The notes below the pieces were generated by a model, which did no database searches, was not told where the DNA came from, and worked only from the letters and a program-made list of their open reading frames with translations. A program made the translations under genes and the position numbers. DNA of 61,870 bases, filler included, from Dugesia japonica (lineage: Eukaryota), in NCBI GenBank assembly GCA_001938525.1. It is 6 parts of 6 records of this genome, joined end to end, with 100 filler letters (N's around TTAATTAATTAA, not from the genome) between each part and the next. Parts side by side here need not be neighbours in the genome. Positions count along the whole stretch, not along the records: positions 1 to 8,960 come from MQRL01632681.1; 5 more parts are not named here. One strand, given 5' to 3'. This document shows positions 1 through 8,960 of this stretch, piece after piece. Each line of letters starts with the position of its first letter. The stretch's first letter is position 1.

Positions 1-827
1 TTAAATATGTAAATTAAAAAAAGACAAAATTATCGAATTTCTTTCATTAATTTTCCCTAACGTAAATACTACAACAAATAAAATCAAGATATCTGTTTTA
101 AAATATTTCACTAAATGGAAAGTCAAATCAAATTCGAAAAAAAACTGTAAATTTNTTTTAACAAAACAAAGAACTAGTTATGAATGTCAAAAAATTTAAT
201 ATTTTAACTAAATAATAATCCTTATAAATAGTTTATTAAATTAATCATAAAAGGAAAATTATTGAATCAGAAATGGAATGTGAAATTGAATTAAAAATAG
301 AATATGCAAAAGAAAAATAATCAATATACATAATTCACCATGTATGTTTGTATGACTATAACGCTTCAATTAAACAAAATATTTAAAACATAAATTTTAA
401 GCTTATAAATTATAAGCATATAAATTTTAAGGATAAAAATTATAAACACTTCAACTAAATGAATTATTGAATTGAAGGAAACTGTGGATTTTCATTTAAA
501 AAAGTGGTTTTTAAAAATGTTTTTATTAAAAAAAATATGAAAAAGAAAAGATAAAATTAATTCTCTTCCATCATTTTTGACGGGTTACATCTAGTTTGTA
601 TATAAACAAAATAGATAAAAAAAACTCGGATTTAGAATTGAAATTTTATTTAAACGAATATTTAATATTTAATAGTATTTAATAATTAGATTATTTTTAT
701 TAATAAATATGTAAAATTTCTATTAATTATACATTACTTAAAATACTATTTCATATTTACCAAAATAAAATTGACATTAATTGAATATTAGAACAAATAC
801 AAAATTAAACTGTGAAATTATTTACAC

Positions 828-1025
828 CTTATAATCTGATCCTTTGGTAATATCAATAAATGCATTCGTCCATGAGGACATTTGAATATTATTGTTAGAT
901 TTAGAAGACCAAATTTCATCACTTTCACTGGAATCATTACACAGATGAAATATTGGAATTATTGAAAATGCACTCACCAAAGAACTGCATACTTCTTATT
1001 AACTCCAGCTCTTTTACTACAATCT
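828..1025 (-). CDS. Variable two-exon cassette 1 of a MAM-like gene (exons 978-1025 and 828-927)
   Basis: Canonical AG/GT boundaries and a 50-nt intron. Spliced: DCSKRAGVNKKYAVLC-ESDEIWSSKSNNNIQMSSWTNAFIDITKGSDYK, open frame. Confidence 0.85.
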
Positions 1026-1151
1026 CTACAATAGGTTAATTTTTATTAATAAATTGTTTTGATTTAAGTATTTAAATGAACACTTCAAGGAACCAAAAAA
1101 ATGTTTAGATTTAAAGAAAAACAAAATAAAGAAAAATTAAAAAATAATTAC

Positions 1152-1345
1152 TTTGAAATCAGACTTTGATTTTAATGTAACAAATGCAGAAATCCATTGA
1201 TTATATGAAGATGACGATTTATCTGACCATATTTCATCACTTTCACTGTATAATAAAGAGATTTATTATTGCCCTAAAACTAAAGATCTCTACATACCAT
1301 GTGACTGCGTACTTTTTTTTGTTGCCCACGTGTTTATTGCAATCA
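1152..1345 (-). CDS. Variable cassette 2 (exons 1298-1345 and 1152-1245)
   Basis: DCNKHVGNKKKYAVTC-ESDEIWSDKSSSSYNQWISAFVTLKSKSDFK; canonical splice sites, same phases as cassette 1. Confidence 0.85.
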
Positions 1346-2044
1346 CTGAAATGAATTTTTACATTTCTCAATTACTAACTAAATAAAGGAGGCTAGATAC
1401 CCAGCAGATATAATTTCATTTGCAATTTACTAGAAATTATGTTGAAGAATCATAAAAAGAAATAAATAAAATTGAGATTTAAAAATTTAATTACAAAAAA
1501 CTCCAAGCTTAACGATATGATGAATAATTATCAAATTTTCTAAAAAGTAAAAGCAATATTATTCAATTAAGTCAGTCATTTATAGTTTTTATTTACATTT
1601 TACTCTAGAAAAGAAATTATCAAAATTAAACTACCATCATAAAAAAATTAATTTAAAGTTTAACGAAAAGTATTGTTCTTAAATGATTACCAATATTTTA
1701 TTTAATAATTAAAATTTAAAAAATAATCACAATATATATTCGATTAAAACAAAGAAACCAAAATATTTTCTTTGTGTTTTTATTGGAGAAAAATGACCAA
1801 AAGACAGAAATCAAACATATGCAAAATATAATTATAGAATAAAACATTGAAATACTAATTTCAACAAATCTTAGCATTAAGAAATATAATTTTAAATTTG
1901 CAAATATTAAGAGTCTCTAAAAAAAGTTCATAAAAAAACATAACAGACAGTCTAAAATTTAAAAATATTTAATGATTTCACAATTCTACATGGTAATATG
2001 AGAAGAAGATCAATAGTAAAATTTTAATTTTTTATTTAAAAAAA

Positions 2045-2355
2045 ATGATTTAACGCAATTTAATATAAAATTGTATTGTAATATATTTCGACGGATCAAC
2101 CGTCATCATCAGACAAAATGAAAAATATGAGATTATTAAGTCTATATTATTCAAACAAAGATTTAAGCAATTTTACTGAATATTAGATAGAATAAAAATT
2201 CAAAGTTTTATAAAAAAATTTTAAACTTTGATAATATTCAGTATAATTACTCAAATCTTTGATTGAATAATCTTTTATTTTTTATTTTATCTAATGATGA
2301 AGGATGATTAGTCAAAAAATATCACAATAAAATTTCATTTTCAATGGCATTATTT
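2045..2355. repeat. Imperfect ~300-bp inverted repeat of two hammerhead-bearing (probably Penelope-like) 3' ends
   Basis: 2045-2210 aligns with the reverse complement of 2215-2355. Each arm carries a hammerhead-like motif pointing outward. Confidence 0.65.
2076..2116 (-). ncRNA. Minimal type I hammerhead ribozyme
   Basis: uugu-CUGAUGA-u-gacgg(uugau)ccguc-GAAA-uaua-UU-acaa: intact core, 5-bp stem II, self-complementary stem III region, stem I uugu/acaa. Confidence 0.8.
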
Positions 2356-2418
2356 AATATTTTCCAGACATTTGACTTTGTTTTACGCATATTTTTTGTA
2401 TTATTATATTAATAATGT

Positions 2419-2483
<65 letters not shown>

Positions 2484-2955
2484 NNNNNNNNNNNNNNNNN
2501 NNNNNNNNNNNNNNNNNNNNNNNNNNNNNNNNNATAGTATATTTTTAATGTTGCAAATCTTTCAGAGGAAATATAATATGAAATATAATATGATATATGA
2601 AATCACTGAAAACATATTTTACAATTCAAAGAGTAAATCAAATTTTAATCGTATTAAGTTTCAATAAAAGTTTCATTTTGAAGACGATTCACTTTATTTG
2701 TTAACTGTAGTTTCATTATCATTCAATGCTATTCACTTTATAAAAAAAGATTACATATAGTATTTTTAACCAGTTGGTATGAAATTTGAGATATTTTATA
2801 ATTATGACCCGTAAAATGGTTATCGATTTCTATTTTTAATATATTATAGTTATTATATACTGGATGTTTGATTTCAAAGAAAATAAAATTCTAAAAAAAT
2901 AGGTTTTCTCAACAAAATCTATTGAAAAAGAAAAATATAAATGAAAATATATATA

Positions 2956-3198
2956 CAGTAAGACCCCGCTTAACGGGAAAGATGCATTTCAAATTCTTAT
3001 AACCTAAATCGGGGTTCAATGCGTACATATGCATATATAAACCGTTTGCATCTTATAAATGTATATACATACATATAATACATGTATGAGCACAATTTGT
3101 ACATCAAAAAATAATTTCAGAAAATATTTTAAAAGCAAAACAAATTTACATCGAAAAAAATCACACTAAAAAAGGCAATGTTAAATGAGAAATTACTG
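2956..3198. mobile_element. pogo/Tc1-type MITE
   Basis: TA-flanked imperfect TIRs cagtaagaccccgcttaac ... gttaaatgagaaattactg. Confidence 0.5.
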
Positions 3199-3286
3199 TA
3201 TATTATAATTAAGTAATAATCAATAAAATATAAATGTTTTCGCTTCATATTTGTCAAAATGAAATCCAATAAAATGTTGTGTCTAC

Positions 3287-3490
3287 CTTAAAATCATTAG
3301 AACTCGGTAAATCAATCATTTGGGTTATCCATACAGATGATGAAATCTTGTTATCATCGCTACTAGTCCATATTTTATCGCTATCACTATATAAAGACGA
3401 TTTTTGTTTTAATTGTAAAATAATAAATTTAATAAAAATAACCAAATCAAAGATTGTTTAACTGAGCTTTTGTCTTTCTGTTGACAAGAC
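3287..3490 (-). CDS. Variable cassette 3 (exons 3443-3490 and 3287-3386)
   Basis: SCQQKDKSSVKQSLIC-DSDKIWTSSDDNKISSSVWITQMIDLPSSNDFK; canonical splice sites. Confidence 0.85.
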
Positions 3491-3619
3491 CTAAATATGA
3501 TAGCTATCGATAAAAGCAATAAAAGTACTATTTTATATTTCAAAATACCAGCAGAAAACCGAAAAATTTGTTCATATAAGAAATGAAAATAACAAAAAAA
3601 AATTAATGAAATGTGATAC

Positions 3620-3812
3620 CTTATAATCATTAGAACTATCAAGGGTTATTTGAGCCATATGCCATTTAGAAACAGATTCAATCGAAACCTGTTTAGAGGT
3701 CCAGATTTCATCACTATCACTGTAAAATATCTGATTTAATATTCACTTTCAGATTAACACTTACCAAGTCAAGGATTGTTTTTTATTACCTTTTACTTTA
3801 TTTTGACAAGCC
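3620..3812 (-). CDS. Variable cassette 4 (exons 3765-3812 and 3620-3719)
   Basis: ACQNKVKGNKKQSLTC-DSDEIWTSKQVSIESVSKWHMAQITLDSSNDYK. Confidence 0.85.
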
Positions 3813-3935
3813 CTAAAAACAATTTCATAGTAGTGTCAATCATCAACAATTATTTATCAAGCACACCGGATAGATACGCACACCAAATACATATTTTATG
3901 AGGTCAGAAATTTACATACATATATAAAAAGAAAC

Positions 3936-4155
3936 CTTATAATCTGTTGAAGAGGCCATAGTTAATTGAACTTCATTCCATTCATTTATTAAACGCTTTA
4001 AAACAACAGATTTTTCTTTTGACTTATCACTGCTCCACAACCGTAAACTATTGCTATTTAAATATTTACATAATATATATATATAACTATTCGCTAGTAA
4101 TGATTACCAGGACAATGTTTGCAATTCTGAATCACCTTGCTGATTTTTGCAAGCC
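3936..4155 (-). CDS. Variable cassette 5 (exons 4108-4155 and 3936-4053)
   Basis: ACKNQQGDSELQTLSC-NSLRLWSSDKSKEKSVVLKRLINEWNEVQLTMASSTDYK; carries a frame-preserving insertion. Confidence 0.8.
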
Positions 4156-4275
4156 CTAAAAATGGTCCAGTAGTAAAATGTGGTAAAAAATATAATTTAA
4201 TTTATATTAAGATAACAATCACCAAGTAAAGCACCAGAAGCAGATAATTAAAAAAAACCATTATGAAATTAATAC

Positions 4276-4363
4276 CTTGAAATCAATATCATTTTTAAGA
4301 TCAATTTTCGCAGATTTCCAAACAATTGATGGTTCATCACTGGACCATATTCTGTAGTTCTCA
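4276..4363 (-). CDS. Orphan second exon of a cassette
   Basis: ag|T-ENYRIWSSDEPSIVWKSAKIDLKNDIDFK|gt; no intact first exon immediately upstream. Confidence 0.7.
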
Positions 4364-4911
4364 CTTAAATCATTTCATATTAATATAATCATATTAAATA
4401 AACAAGACGGAAGTCACTTATCATGAAAAAGAATTATTTCTCAACATAAATAAAGTTTTAAAAATGATTTATTTATATTATTAAATTATTATAAAACGTA
4501 AAATTATATCATTCATCATACTTAAAAGAGAAAACTTAAGAATATCTTGTATTCACGTGACTCTAATTTAGTGTCACAACATTCTGAAGCTTTGGGAAAA
4601 ACTCGGTCAAATTAAGTAAATGTAATTAAAAAAAAGTTTCTTTAAAACAATTAATAAATTATAAGATAAAAATTTAAACAAAAAAGGNNNNNNNNNNNNN
4701 NNNNNNNNNNNNNNNNNNNNNNNNNNNNNNNNNNNNNNNNNNNNNNNNNNNNNNNNNNNNNNNNNNNNNNNNNNNNNNNNNNNNNNNNNNNNNNNNNNNN
4801 NNNNNNNNNNNNNNNNNNNNNNNNNNNNNNNNNNNNNNNNNNNNNNNNNNNNNNNNNNNNNNNNNNNNNNNNNNNNNNNNNNNNNNNNNNNNNNNNNNNN
4901 NNNNNNNNNNN

Positions 4912-4950
4912 GTTTTAAACGGACTATTTCCTCATAATAAGCGACAACCA
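4912..4950 (-). pseudogene. Broken first exon of a cassette (runs into an N gap)
   Basis: catatttag|T GGT TGT CGC TTA TTA TGA GGA AAT...: GCRLL*GN, with an in-frame stop. Confidence 0.5.
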
Positions 4951-5241
4951 CTAAATATGATATGAATATTAAATTCAAAAAAAAAACATTCTAAAATTTT
5001 CTGAAATTAAGAATACGAATTTGGTTTTATTAATTTAACAATTTTATTTTTCTATTAAATAAAATAATAAAAAACAGATTGATTTTGTATAATGAAAATA
5101 ATTTTTTATTAATACTAAAATAATAAAAATATCCATCCGTAAGGAGATTGTAAATAATCATGTAACGAATAAAAATATATTTATATATTTTAAATATAAA
5201 TATATTATATTTAATATTATTAAATATTATATAATATTTAC

Positions 5242-5290
5242 CAAGACAATGTTTCTAATTCGGAATTAATTTGCTGATTTTTTTCAAACT
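5242..5290 (-). pseudogene. Broken first exon, a recent duplicate of the cassette-5 first exon
   Basis: 5235-5385 aligns to 4100-4250 including the intron. The exon is 49 nt and its Cys codon has become TGA. Confidence 0.7.
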
Positions 5291-5827
5291 CTAAATGTGG
5301 TCCAGTAGTAAAATCTGATAACAAAAAATAGTTTAATTTATTCTAGATAACAATCACCAGATAAAAGACTAAAAGCAGCAATAAAATATCAATAAAACGT
5401 GGAAATTTAACAAAAAAAATATGATTATATTTACTGCTGAATTTGTTTTAATCATTTTGAAGAAATATCGTTCTATATAACAAAATGAAATATTGTCAGG
5501 TCTAATTTAGAGAAAATATGTTTTCATTAATAATCTCATTATAACAAAACTATTAGAACATAATGAGTGAAATTATGTTGTGAATGAATAAGACAATTTA
5601 TAAATTATATTTAAATTAACTTATAAACTGTCAAATGAAAATAAAGCTTATCGTGACATGAATAAAACGGATTTCATCAGCAAAAATCTTTAAAATATAA
5701 TATTTTAGTAAAAATAAATTAACATGTTTCATTTTTACCCACGAACAAGTATTATTTTATGAGATATTATTTAATAAAATTGAATACAATATTCATATCA
5801 TATTATCTTGTAAGTTATATTTCTAAC

Positions 5828-5875
5828 CAAGTAAAGGCCTGCTTTACGGCATCTCCAGAATGAGATTTACAAGAT
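5828..5875 (-). CDS. Orphan first exon of a cassette
   Basis: ag|A-SCKSHSGDAVKQAFT-TG|gt, 48 nt; partner exon not recognisable as intact. Confidence 0.7.
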
Positions 5876-5991
5876 CTAAATACAAGTGACATTGTAATTT
5901 AATTCAACGAAAATTAATAAATTTCCAAAAGCAGAACGGTTAATTTTATTTTGATTTAAAAAAATTAATAACAAATCTTTAAAAAAAACAC

Positions 5992-6194
5992 CTTAAAATC
6001 ATTTTGGACTGATATATCAACGTAAGCAGTATTCCAGCCATTATTAGTTGTTTCCGTCTTTTCACTTATCCATATTCGATAACTTTCACTACATGTGATA
6101 CAAAAAAACAGATAACATTTCATAAAGGAATAATTGCATCACTCACCATAGAAGAGCCTGCTTAACATCATTTCCTTCTTGTTTTTTACAAGAA
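5992..6194 (-). CDS. Variable cassette 6 (exons 6147-6194 and 5992-6088)
   Basis: SCKKQEGNDVKQALLC-ESYRIWISEKTETTNNGWNTAYVDISVQNDFK. Confidence 0.85.
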
Positions 6195-8333
6195 CTAATA
6201 TAAAAAAAACAAAGTCACGAAATATTTATGAAACGAAAAAAAATGAAATTGCCAAAAGCAGACAGAATTCGTTTTAATTTTTCCATTGAAAAAAAANNNN
6301 NNNNNNNNNNNNNNNNNNNNNNNNNNNNNNNNNNNNNNNNNNTATTATTGGAAAAATAAAAAGGTCTGTAAATTTTTAAGAATATTTGAAATAGAAACTC
6401 AAAATATCCACTGCGATTTTCATAGAAAATTTAATGGAAATTTGGAATTTTATTCTTCTCATAATTTAATTAAATACTTTTTAGATTGAAATCATTACAT
6501 ACATATAAAATATAATTTCAAATAATAGTGAGAGTTGTAAATTTAAAATTTAATTAAATTAAATAAAAGATATAAAATTAATGATTTAAAATAGAAAAAA
6601 TAATTTTTAGATAAATTTCGAATGTTTCCATTTTATGTATGATGAATAGATTTTTATTAAAATAACAGAAGATGACAAAATATTCAGAATAATGTTTTGT
6701 TTGAATATTGTAATTGTTGTGAGTTAGTTTTTTGAAGTATAAATTTGTGAATTATTTCGTTTTTTATAATAAATTCCTTAGATTTACAAAATAGCAAGTC
6801 TAACATAGCGATAATATGCTCATTTAAAAATTCTTTTGGAAGTATTATTTATTAATATGTCCATAAAAATACCATCTATATGTACAGTATAACTTTAAAC
6901 TGTAAATTATAATTGACAAAACAGTGGTTTACAAACGAGTGATATGTGAATATCCAAAGAATTCAAATATCTTGTTTCCAATTAAATTAATGATTGGAAG
7001 AACTTCAATGATATTAAGTATAAGTGAGATGGAAATCCGATGAAAAAAGTAAATAAATTAATGTAATGAAAATTAATCGAAAAATGTTGTCAATTTTTCG
7101 TGTTTTTCAATCATGTCTGAAGATTGGCATATTATAAAACATGATGTTTCTGGGGAAATTTTTTTTAAGAGAATTAAAAAATGAACTTGTTTCTCACAGC
7201 ATGCAATAAATTGATGATATTCCAGAGTAGATTAATTGGTTTTTAAACTCTATTGTTGAAATATTTGTTTATTTGTTATATAATTGAATGTTAATTATCC
7301 AAATAAAATGTCTGTTTAAATTTTCGTGGAAAACACTATTTAAAATATCTGTTATTACTGATTTCTAACTATTAAAATTTTGATTTTAAATATTAATTAA
7401 AATTGAAATAACAATATGTTAAATTTTAACATTTTAATTGGATTTTTTTAATCTTAACTTGTATATATTTTGATAATAATATCCAAATCAGAAAATTATG
7501 TTACTAATTTTTAAGCTTAAATAACTTATCCGTTTCTAATTAAAGACTTTCTCGACAGTTAATCAAAAAATATTTAAGTAAAAATCGTTCAGCCAGTTTT
7601 TTTTAAAAATTATTTTTTTTATTAATTTGTATTTAATTTAAAAATCTTTTCGAATTGAAACGAATTGTATTAATTCCAGTGAAATATTTTAAATTCTAAA
7701 ATCAAAGGTAATTAATTATTGAATACTCAAATAACCTAGACAAAACTGAATGTATTATAACATTATCGAGGAAATTATTAGAACATATTCAAAATATTTA
7801 ACTATCATTTTAAAATTAAAGATATTTTTGAAAATTAAGAAATAGAGTTATCTTTTACTGAAATAATAGAATTTTATGAATATGTCAATTGAATTTGAGC
7901 TTTAAAATAAGTAATGAAATATTTGAGATTAAAAAGAGTTACTACCGAGACAACTGGAAAATAGAAAACACATATTTTAGATATTTCTCGCATGATAATC
8001 ATGATCATTTTCAATTCATTTTTCTATAAATGTTAGATGGCAAAATATAAATTTTTATTTATTTTTAATTTCAGATTAAAAATTAATCATTTTCTAAAAC
8101 AAACTAATGAATGGGGCGAGGAATTTTGGCCGGTTTTAATTCCTCATTATNNNNNNNNNNNNNNNNNNNNNNNNNNNNNNNNNNNNNNNNNNNNNNNNNN
8201 NNNNNNNNNNNNNNNNNNNNNNNNNNNNNNNNNNNNNNNNNNNNNNNNNNNNNNNNNNNNNNNNNNNNNAATAAAGAAAAGTTAATTAATCAAAAAATTA
8301 TTTAATACTTTGTTTATTAAAAATTTATATAAC

Positions 8334-8525
8334 CTTGAAATCATTGTCAATGGTAATCGACACATGCACTTGATCCCATTTTCCAATACCCCTTCCCCCA
8401 CTGCTCCATATTTCAGCACTATCACTAAACCAACGAATAATAGGAAAATTACTAGCGAACCAGTCATTGATTACCAAGCCATAGTTTGTAATTTAGAATC
8501 GCCTAATTTCCGGAGTCTACAAGCA
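8334..8525 (-). CDS. Variable cassette 7 (exons 8475-8525 and 8334-8424)
   Basis: ACRLRKLGDSKLQTMAC-DSAEIWSSGGRGIGKWDQVHVSITIDNDFK; the most MAM-like copy (IW..G.G..W..V.V.I....F). Confidence 0.85.
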
Positions 8526-8665
8526 CTGAAGGGAATAAAAATTTTAATACACCCATCAAACGTAAATTCGACTACAAGGTATCTAAGCTACATGCTGAAC
8601 GGATATTTAATTTTAAAAAACAAAAACGAAATAAAAAAGTAGAAGTTTGACAAATAATAAACTAC

Positions 8666-8875
8666 CTTATAATCGGCTGTACTTTCAAGAGTTATGTAAA
8701 CATAATTCCAATTACTTTTTAAATCTTTATTAGTATTAGATTTCCAAATTTCAGAACTATCACTGAAAATATTATAAAATTGCTTTATTTTCACCAGAAA
8801 GTTTTAAACCAATGATATACCAACCATGTCAGAGATTGCAATTTTGCATCACCTCGATCTTCTTTACGACAAGAT
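8666..8875 (-). CDS. Variable cassette 8 (exons 8825-8875 and 8666-8762)
   Basis: SCRKEDRGDAKLQSLTC-DSSEIWKSNTNKDLKSNWNYVYITLESTADYK. Confidence 0.85.
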
Positions 8876-8960
8876 CTATAAAGAATCCCTATTAAAAATT
8901 TTACATCTCTTTTTGCAAACAAGGTACCAGAAAAACGGATTTTTAAATTTATAAATTTGT

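Follow-up and report, generated by a model that had tools for sequence, protein, structure and literature searches.

A tandem array of two-exon cassettes in Dugesia japonica: a candidate Dscam-style system of mutually exclusive splicing in a MAM-domain gene

The DNA considered here, hereafter the window, is a stretch of 61,870 nucleotides (nt) joined from six records of the Dugesia japonica assembly GCA_001938525.1, and its first part (positions 1-8960, from MQRL01632681.1) carries a tandem array of short exons that form two-exon cassettes, each with an upstream exon A and a downstream exon B. This piece, with a GC content of about 20% (published genomes of the monogenean Gyrodactylus have 31-39%; PMC12677651), was analysed; coordinates are given along the whole stretch and the exons are read on the minus strand. 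Exons A were searched for with the pattern AG/N NNN TG[TC] ... TG/GT and exons B with the pattern AG/[TC] ... GA[TC] T[AT][TC] AA[AG]/GT (slashes mark exon boundaries), each search being followed by frame checks. Nine exons A, each of 48 or 51 nt, and nine exons B of 88-118 nt, all 3n+1 in length, were obtained. They make up eight complete A+B pairs, with an orphan A and an orphan B left over, and to these a broken A has to be added. The introns between A and B measure 45-62 nt and divide a Cys codon as TG/T or TG/C, the sum of A and B is 3n+1 in all eight pairs, and an AG acceptor and a GT donor are present at every exon of the intact pairs. The first-pass annotation of this DNA had described eight intact minus-strand exon pairs with exon A always of 48 or 51 nt, exon B always 3n+1 (88-118 nt), a split Cys codon, canonical splice sites and open frames, and each of these features was recovered in all eight pairs. 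A repeat search independently recovered the exons A and both ends of the exons B as repeat families. Tandem homologous variants, common phases and intact splice sites, as expected of a mutually exclusive exon cluster, are all found here.

Read along the minus strand, cassette 1 comprises exon A at 8825-8875 (51 nt; SCRKEDRGDAKLQSLT followed by the TG of the Cys codon) and exon B at 8666-8762 (97 nt), and cassette 2 comprises A at 8475-8525 (51 nt) and B at 8334-8424 (91 nt). Cassette 3 lies at 6147-6194 (A, 48 nt) and 5992-6088 (B, 97 nt). The next three cassettes are found at 4108-4155 and 3936-4053 (cassette 4; A of 48 nt, B of 118 nt, with the longest loop between the two Trp residues), 3765-3812 and 3620-3719 (cassette 5; 48 and 100 nt), and 3443-3490 and 3287-3386 (cassette 6; 48 and 100 nt). 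Cassette 7 (A at 1298-1345, 48 nt; B at 1152-1245, 94 nt) and cassette 8 (A at 978-1025, 48 nt; B at 828-927, 100 nt) complete the set.

Three further exons on the same strand stand outside complete pairs. An orphan exon A of 48 nt (5828-5875) is open and has its AG and GT, with no exon B within the usual 45-62 nt, and an orphan exon B of 88 nt (4276-4363) is likewise open with AG and GT and has no recognisable exon A upstream. It is a speculative idea that the orphan A (5875-5828) could join the orphan B (4363-4276) over a 1.46-kb intron that holds an assembly gap. The third is a broken exon A at approximately 5241-5291, which has lost its first Cys codon and contains an in-frame TGA. Together with its upstream spacer it is a 75% copy (5279-5378) of 4144-4243, a recent partial duplication of an exon A and upstream spacer which has already been disabled by the in-frame stop, and this disabled duplicate points to ongoing birth and death within the array. 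The first-pass annotation had listed four orphan or broken exons; these three stand, and the fourth was recovered neither by nhmmer nor by a six-frame hidden Markov model (HMM) search. No further cassette copy was detected in the piece by nhmmer with DNA profiles of A and B or by the six-frame HMM search, and a candidate degenerate exon A near 4590-4540 was ruled out, having no nhmmer signal.

The array falls into four blocks, all on one strand, separated by spacers of about 1.5-2 kb that each hold an N gap. There are four such gaps, all in long spacers and none in contact with any exon or A-B intron: 8151-8269 (65 nt past the exon B of cassette 2, at 8334), 6297-6342 (103 nt before the exon A of cassette 3, at 6194), 4688-4911 (flanked by the broken A and the orphan B) and 2484-2533 (deep inside a 1.9-kb spacer). 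No reading frame runs across a gap. What the gaps affect is just the cassette count, a hidden cassette being conceivable, and how the four blocks are ordered at scaffold level. An (ATA)26 microsatellite at 2406-2483 abuts the gap at 2484-2533 and is probably the cause of it.

The lengths and phases of these exons restrict how they can be combined. When an exon B is joined straight to the next exon A, a stop is encountered within that exon A at all eight junctions tested, which extends the earlier claim of stops in six adjacent cases. Splicing in zero, two or three cassettes produces a frameshift, and the next exon A in frame 0 carries stops. The spacers 3813-3935 and 4156-4275 were confirmed to contain no internal AG, as had also been stated earlier. 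These results bear on the possibility that all cassettes are included in series, by way of linker micro-exons, non-canonical sites or recoding, to give a repeat protein. The regular spacing of the units would suit such an arrangement, and the two Cys residues of each unit could form a small module; however, the eight stops at direct B-to-A junctions speak against it, as do the two spacers lacking any AG and the depletion of AG in the spacers overall. As described below, a single cassette also covers just about 40 of the 158 positions of the MAM profile and is sufficient to complete it, and we consider serial inclusion extremely improbable.

Constraint on the copies was assessed from their frames, composition and divergence. 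Stops occur at 0.082 per codon on the minus strand, and the probability that eight frames of 47-55 codons would all be open by chance is approximately 3e-15. The exons have a GC content of 33% compared to 20% in the rest of the piece. Pairwise amino acid identity between the window cassettes ranges from 22 to 53%. A comparison of the dN/dS type, which the first-pass annotation had suggested, gave a mean pS (synonymous) of 0.64, which is saturated, above a mean pN (nonsynonymous) of 0.45, and the introns and flanks or spacers are at shuffle level (identity 0.53-0.56 against 0.51 for shuffled sequences). Both Cys, both Trp, the D[FY]K ending, the frame and the four canonical splice sites are nevertheless kept in all eight pairs. 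By this evidence the cassettes are old sequences under long-term constraint, and the broken copy displays how an unconstrained one looks.

Such conservation has to be set against the simplest rival account, namely that one cassette is constitutive, while tandem duplication has left the others as pseudo-exons without any use. One visibly broken copy and two orphans agree with that account, and the use of any particular cassette is a prediction from sequence. Dead duplicates with saturated synonymous sites and randomised introns, however, would hardly be expected to keep open frames, both Cys, both Trp, D[FY]K and every splice site in eight of eight pairs here and in about 19 cassettes of a related species, and the chance figure for the eight open frames, the AG-depleted spacers and a conserved intron element (both below) argue in the same direction. 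Therefore, we regard this account as unlikely.

The affinity of the cassettes was sought with a profile of the nine window exons B, which was searched against 1.84 billion proteins and returned six matches; the only clear relative is a mis-predicted gene of the monogenean flatworm Cichlidogyrus casuarinus. The match from this species (P0003, E 1.4e-6) is a 251-residue "hypothetical protein" whose model runs through several cassettes. The vertebrate protein P0006 (library-wide E 7e-4) has seven MAM matches, and in each MAM domain the B profile finds a single alignment, to the C-terminal strands at ...W.LAQVDLT..GDF, immediately before the final ..IIEG strand. The other four, P0001, P0002, P0004 and P0005, were set aside; they are long, internally repetitive proteins, read as bacterial from their sequences, and their matches are taken to be generic ones to W...[IV].L. 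In the reverse direction, a profile based solely on the Cichlidogyrus cassettes gave each of the eight window cassettes, in spliced form, a score of 23-32 bits, compared to at most 11 bits for 1600 shuffles, and the only six-frame segments of the piece that exceeded the best shuffle were the nine B-exon frames. A Pfam search with single window cassettes gave no match at E<=10, and hence no MAM. A tie of the window cassettes to MAM is suggested by the match of their profile to the strands of P0006 and by their homology to Cichlidogyrus cassettes, which align to MAM positions of about 87-135.

Several other searches added no relatives. Three concatenated window cassettes had no match in a word-indexed protein search covering a limited range of protein lengths; in the same search, a composite Cichlidogyrus isoform returned only the neighbouring fragments P0007 and P0008, and a profile of the N-half exons described below returned only P0007. 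Longer relatives may lie outside the length range of this index. The composite isoform gave nothing at E<=1 in a PDB sequence search, a metagenome scan with a 56-residue window frame yielded no relative, and Rfam and tRNA scans of the piece were empty. No coding segment resembling the N-half or the C-terminal part of a MAM domain is present in the piece in any frame, so that it represents an internal part of a cassette array.

The first-pass annotation had suggested that the array be sought in related genomes, and the Cichlidogyrus casuarinus locus, which was examined in two regions of contig JBJKFK010000354.1 (L001 and L002; positions are those in the regions), carries about 19 homologous cassettes on the plus strand (L001 9217-15451). 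The cassettes of both species share the pattern xC-x12-14-C-x4-[LIV]W ... W...[LIV].[LIV]...D[FY]K, and they agree in A/B split, in exon sizes and in phases. In 15 of the relative's cassettes the split falls at the same Cys codon as in the window, with introns of 32-46 nt. The remaining four have no A-B intron (L001 10018-10159, 11533-11683, 12552-12699 and 15310-15451), a fused form that has no counterpart in the window, and these directly confirm the A/B junction. Inter-cassette introns measure 56-104 nt in the relative compared to 116-140 nt in the window.

Upstream of these cassettes, at least 16 alternative exons for the N-terminal half of the domain (N-half exons) make up a second array: 12 in L001 338-8728 and four in L002 1-1571. 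The count is a lower bound, as this array continues upstream past the fetched region. All 12 L001 exons have AG and GT, are 283-307 nt long (3n+1), start after phase 1 and end GG/GT (phase 2). The four in L002 are open frames with the same LLRHS.G ending; splice sites and lengths were mapped for the 12 in L001 only. The exons share the pattern ..DC.F....C.W....W...C.....C..F......L..LRHS.G, in which the four Cys are invariant in 12 of 12. Because they are also 3n+1, two N-half exons in series would likewise break the frame. Downstream, 96 nt after the last cassette, a constant exon (L001 15548-15635) starts in phase 0 and encodes LILEGSIPAGYPDAKICVDNITTYTEPCS, which holds the C-terminal Cys of the relative's domain; the depositor's gene model P0008 uses the junction DFK/LILEG. 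This exon ends in phase 1, which, together with the start of the N-half exons after phase 1, makes the whole a 1-1 module. The contig ends 529 nt further on; transmembrane exons following the constant exon in L001 were seen as candidates only and are not claimed.

When an N-half exon, a single cassette and the constant exon are joined, they give 178 residues that match PF00629 over its full length (1-158 of 158; 51.3 bits, gathering cut-off 26.4; E 1.5e-13). The N-half alone covers positions 1-95, cassette plus constant exon 99-158 and the cassette itself about 87-135. Since one cassette completes the profile, a cassette constitutes approximately a quarter of the domain, and exactly one is needed per domain. 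The MAM resemblance that had been suggested from the W...W pattern is supported at two levels, in the full domain formed by the relative's one-cassette unit and in the alignment of the window B profile once per vertebrate MAM domain. The phases also agree with the earlier prediction of a phase-2 partner upstream and a phase-0 partner downstream, as the relative's N-half exons end GG/GT and its constant exon starts in phase 0. The proposal that one pair is spliced between shared exons fits on the downstream side, where the relative has a single constant exon, but not on the upstream side, where it has an array of at least 16 N-half exons. A phase lock results in the relative: the N-half ends in phase 2, a cassette of 3n+1 leads to phase 0, and the constant exon starts in phase 0. 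Taken together, the 3n+1 length of A+B, the stops upon B-to-A joining and these flanking phases render the inclusion of no variant, or of more than one, non-productive. Flanking exons with compatible phases are present in Cichlidogyrus casuarinus only, the window holding none.

The layout of the relative's locus also bears on whether each cassette or block might instead belong to its own transcription unit or to one of several tandem MAM domains, as the division of the window array into four blocks by gap-holding spacers of about 1.5-2 kb could suggest. The absence of any N-half-like or C-terminal-like coding segment from the piece in any frame stands against this, and the estimated gap sizes of 46-224 nt are too short for an N-half exon of about 290 nt. 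Within the blocks only 116-140 nt separate neighbouring cassettes, and the relative keeps its N-half exons and its cassettes in two separate homogeneous arrays. Separate genes or domains are decidedly unlikely on these grounds. Public annotation cuts the relative's locus into at least five proteins of 1235, 335, 128, 251 and 139 residues, named "hypothetical" or "MAM domain-containing", and some of the annotated models read through introns; owing to such fragmentation, loci of this kind are invisible in current proteomes.

In a tree the cassettes cluster by species (99/99), with about 26% identity between the two species, indicating that the expansions, or some degree of homogenisation, are lineage-specific. 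Clustering of this kind is compatible with sequence exchange inside the array and can be counted in favour of a rival account in which the cassettes act as silent donors, their sequence entering a single expressed copy by gene conversion or somatic rearrangement. Lamprey VLR and the chicken pseudo-V genes are examples of diversification from donors at the DNA level, and a large array of diverged partial-domain segments beside a constant part is what such a system would also present. Every cassette here, however, has a functional-looking acceptor and donor and its own internal intron, the frames and phases match splicing exactly, no recombination signals were seen, and copies with 22-53% identity are far too diverged for ongoing homogenisation. 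We thus hold diversification at the DNA level to be highly improbable.

The reading we favour, and consider probable, is that the piece is part of one extracellular MAM gene in which mutually exclusive two-exon cassettes encode approximately Pfam positions 96-135. Frames, domain completeness and conservation all argue for mutual exclusivity, and we infer that a cassette is selected during the splicing of a single pre-mRNA and that most of the cassettes are in use. One pre-mRNA would span both arrays, and splicing would take one N-half exon and one cassette. At its upstream side the cassette would be joined to a phase-2 exon for the N-terminal 95 MAM positions, in the relative picked from the second array, and at its downstream side to a constant phase-0 exon that would supply the last strands (..EG....D[DN]I...C). 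Exon A would contribute an extra disulfide loop, C-x13/14-C, and exon B the strands IW.S and W...[VI].[LI], a loop of variable length between them and the D[FY]K ending. The A+B pair would behave as a unit through the very short A-B intron, an interpretation drawn from the shortness of that intron and from its loss in four of the relative's cassettes. Only mRNAs with a single cassette would give protein, mis-spliced products being substrates of nonsense-mediated decay (NMD).

The loop between the two Trp residues varies from about 8 to 21 residues, and the exon A loop replaces a short turn of the canonical MAM domain; as these two loops are the most variable parts, they would suit a swapped recognition surface. 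For the relative, at least 16 N-half exons combined with about 19 cassettes would make roughly 300 MAM variants possible. The broader proposition is that a flatworm-like lineage has independently invented Dscam-style diversity on a non-Ig fold, with at least 16 N-terminal exons and some 8-20 cassettes giving hundreds of surface-recognition variants; our confidence in it is evenly balanced. Such variants might function in self-recognition, neuronal or cellular, or else at the interface of host and parasite. Cichlidogyrus casuarinus is a parasite of fish gills, for which a role at the host interface is a possibility.

Several points weigh against the favoured reading. The flanking phases are taken from a distant relative with about 26% cassette identity, as the window's own flanks lie outside the piece, and the order of the four blocks rests on scaffolding across the gaps. 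The protein and metagenome searches found no transcript or protein of the window's organism. The inter-cassette introns are spliceable, and nothing was seen that prevents an exon B from joining the next exon A before NMD acts. The complement of the conserved intron element described next was not found in the piece, and a crude test for a pile-up of docking/selector duplexes in L001 gave nothing above shuffles.

Candidate signals for the choice of a cassette were looked for in the short inter-cassette spacers (8526-8665, 5876-5991, 4156-4275, 3813-3935, 3491-3619 and 1026-1151). AG occurs nine times in these spacers compared to 23.2 expected, with the other dinucleotides at expectation, and AG-free zones of 99-169 nt precede four exons A, the median distance from AG to AG in the piece being 16 nt. 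This depletion hints at distant branch points or at selection against cryptic acceptors. In addition, an element of the form TCTGCT(N0-4)GG is found 56-89 nt upstream of A acceptors, before seven of ten exons A. Its best copy (TTCTGCTTTTGG) is at 5925-5936 on the minus strand, and related copies on that strand are at 8926-8931, 6252-6263, 5369-5380, 4233-4245, 3550-3555 and 1403-1408. The element was first spotted by eye and then tested separately: of the nine occurrences of TCTG[CG]T on the entire strand, eight are 56-89 nt upstream of an A acceptor, one is in an A-B intron and none is in the long spacers. The sharing of 8-mers among the spacers did not exceed that of shuffles. In the relative, YTGCT is mildly enriched in inter-cassette introns (13 compared to 6.4 expected) and absent from intra-cassette introns. 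The UGCU within the element is a YGCY motif such as Muscleblind-type factors bind, and the element may be a site for a splicing regulator or may act as a selector whose docking site lies beyond the piece. The TCTGCT..GG element and the AG-free spacers are accordingly put forward as candidate cis-signals for cassette choice. Since the inter-cassette introns are long enough to splice, steric hindrance is an unlikely explanation of the choice.

Among known systems, exons 4, 6 and 9 of arthropod Dscam1 are the closest in logic, as they form tandem arrays of diverged alternative exons in one gene. Each variant there is part of an extracellular recognition domain, variants of exon 4 and exon 6 encoding half Ig domains, and more than one array per gene is used combinatorially. 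The present system differs from Dscam1 in having a MAM rather than an Ig fold, in that both arrays build a single domain (in the relative) and the cassette array varies by exon pairs, and in its flatworm-like, non-arthropod host; docking/selector pairing was not detected, and splicing is deduced here from sequence. Chelicerate sDscam and the vertebrate clustered protocadherins likewise have tandem variable cassettes joined to constant exons. The first-pass annotation had set the choice of an exon pair apart from known arrays, which is valid in comparison with Dscam1 but not in general, given that mite sDscam-beta cassettes are multi-exon, with four exons each, and are picked by promoter (PMC9258826). 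The sDscam and protocadherin cassettes are 5' units with their own promoters, whereas the MAM cassettes are internal and have phase-matched exons on both sides; hence the choice among them must occur at splicing.

Mutually exclusive exon pairs that are frame-incompatible and policed by NMD are exemplified by FGFR2 IIIb/IIIc. The MAM cassettes resemble this type in that the variant length is not a multiple of three and double inclusion or skipping leads to premature stops; the FGFR2 type, however, consists of pairs of single exons, compared to at least eight two-exon units here (about 19 in the relative) and a second array. Among MAM proteins (PF00629: meprin, A5/neuropilin, RPTP mu and zonadhesin-like), to which the relative's composite belongs by its match to the full profile, the window exons B align to the W..V.L...F strands of vertebrate domains, and the cassettes depart from the canonical domain by the extra C-x13/14-C loop of exon A in place of a short turn. 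Schistosome micro-exon genes (MEGs) form another flatworm system, in which alternative splicing has been proposed as a means of diversifying secreted proteins. What MEGs skip are symmetric micro-exons, and the proteins are unstructured, whereas the homologous MAM cassettes would exchange strands and loops within a folded domain and their skipping is out of frame.

We know of no MAM gene with alternative exon arrays, and no description of such a gene or of such a locus was found in the full-text literature, subscription journals being outside the coverage. To our knowledge, arthropod Dscam is essentially the only known case of large mutually exclusive exon arrays that vary a recognition domain; vertebrates and chelicerates rely on promoter choice instead. 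Judged from its sequence, the locus looks like a previously undescribed Dscam-style diversity generator. If this is true, it would be a second, independent case, outside the arthropods and on the MAM jelly-roll, with both halves of one domain chosen combinatorially. It would further offer a natural comparison for how the spliceosome picks exactly one variant, here an exon pair with no obvious docking site, and for the selective pressures that create such systems.

Two minor features of the piece were also recorded. An open frame of 118 codons on the plus strand (8286-8639), antisense to cassette 2 and with no Pfam match, is most likely a side effect of the coding sequence on the other strand. 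A 55-nt inverted repeat (2146-2200 and 2217-2271; 80% complementary, with a 16-nt loop) lies in a long AT-rich spacer and could represent either a hairpin or what is left of a small transposon.

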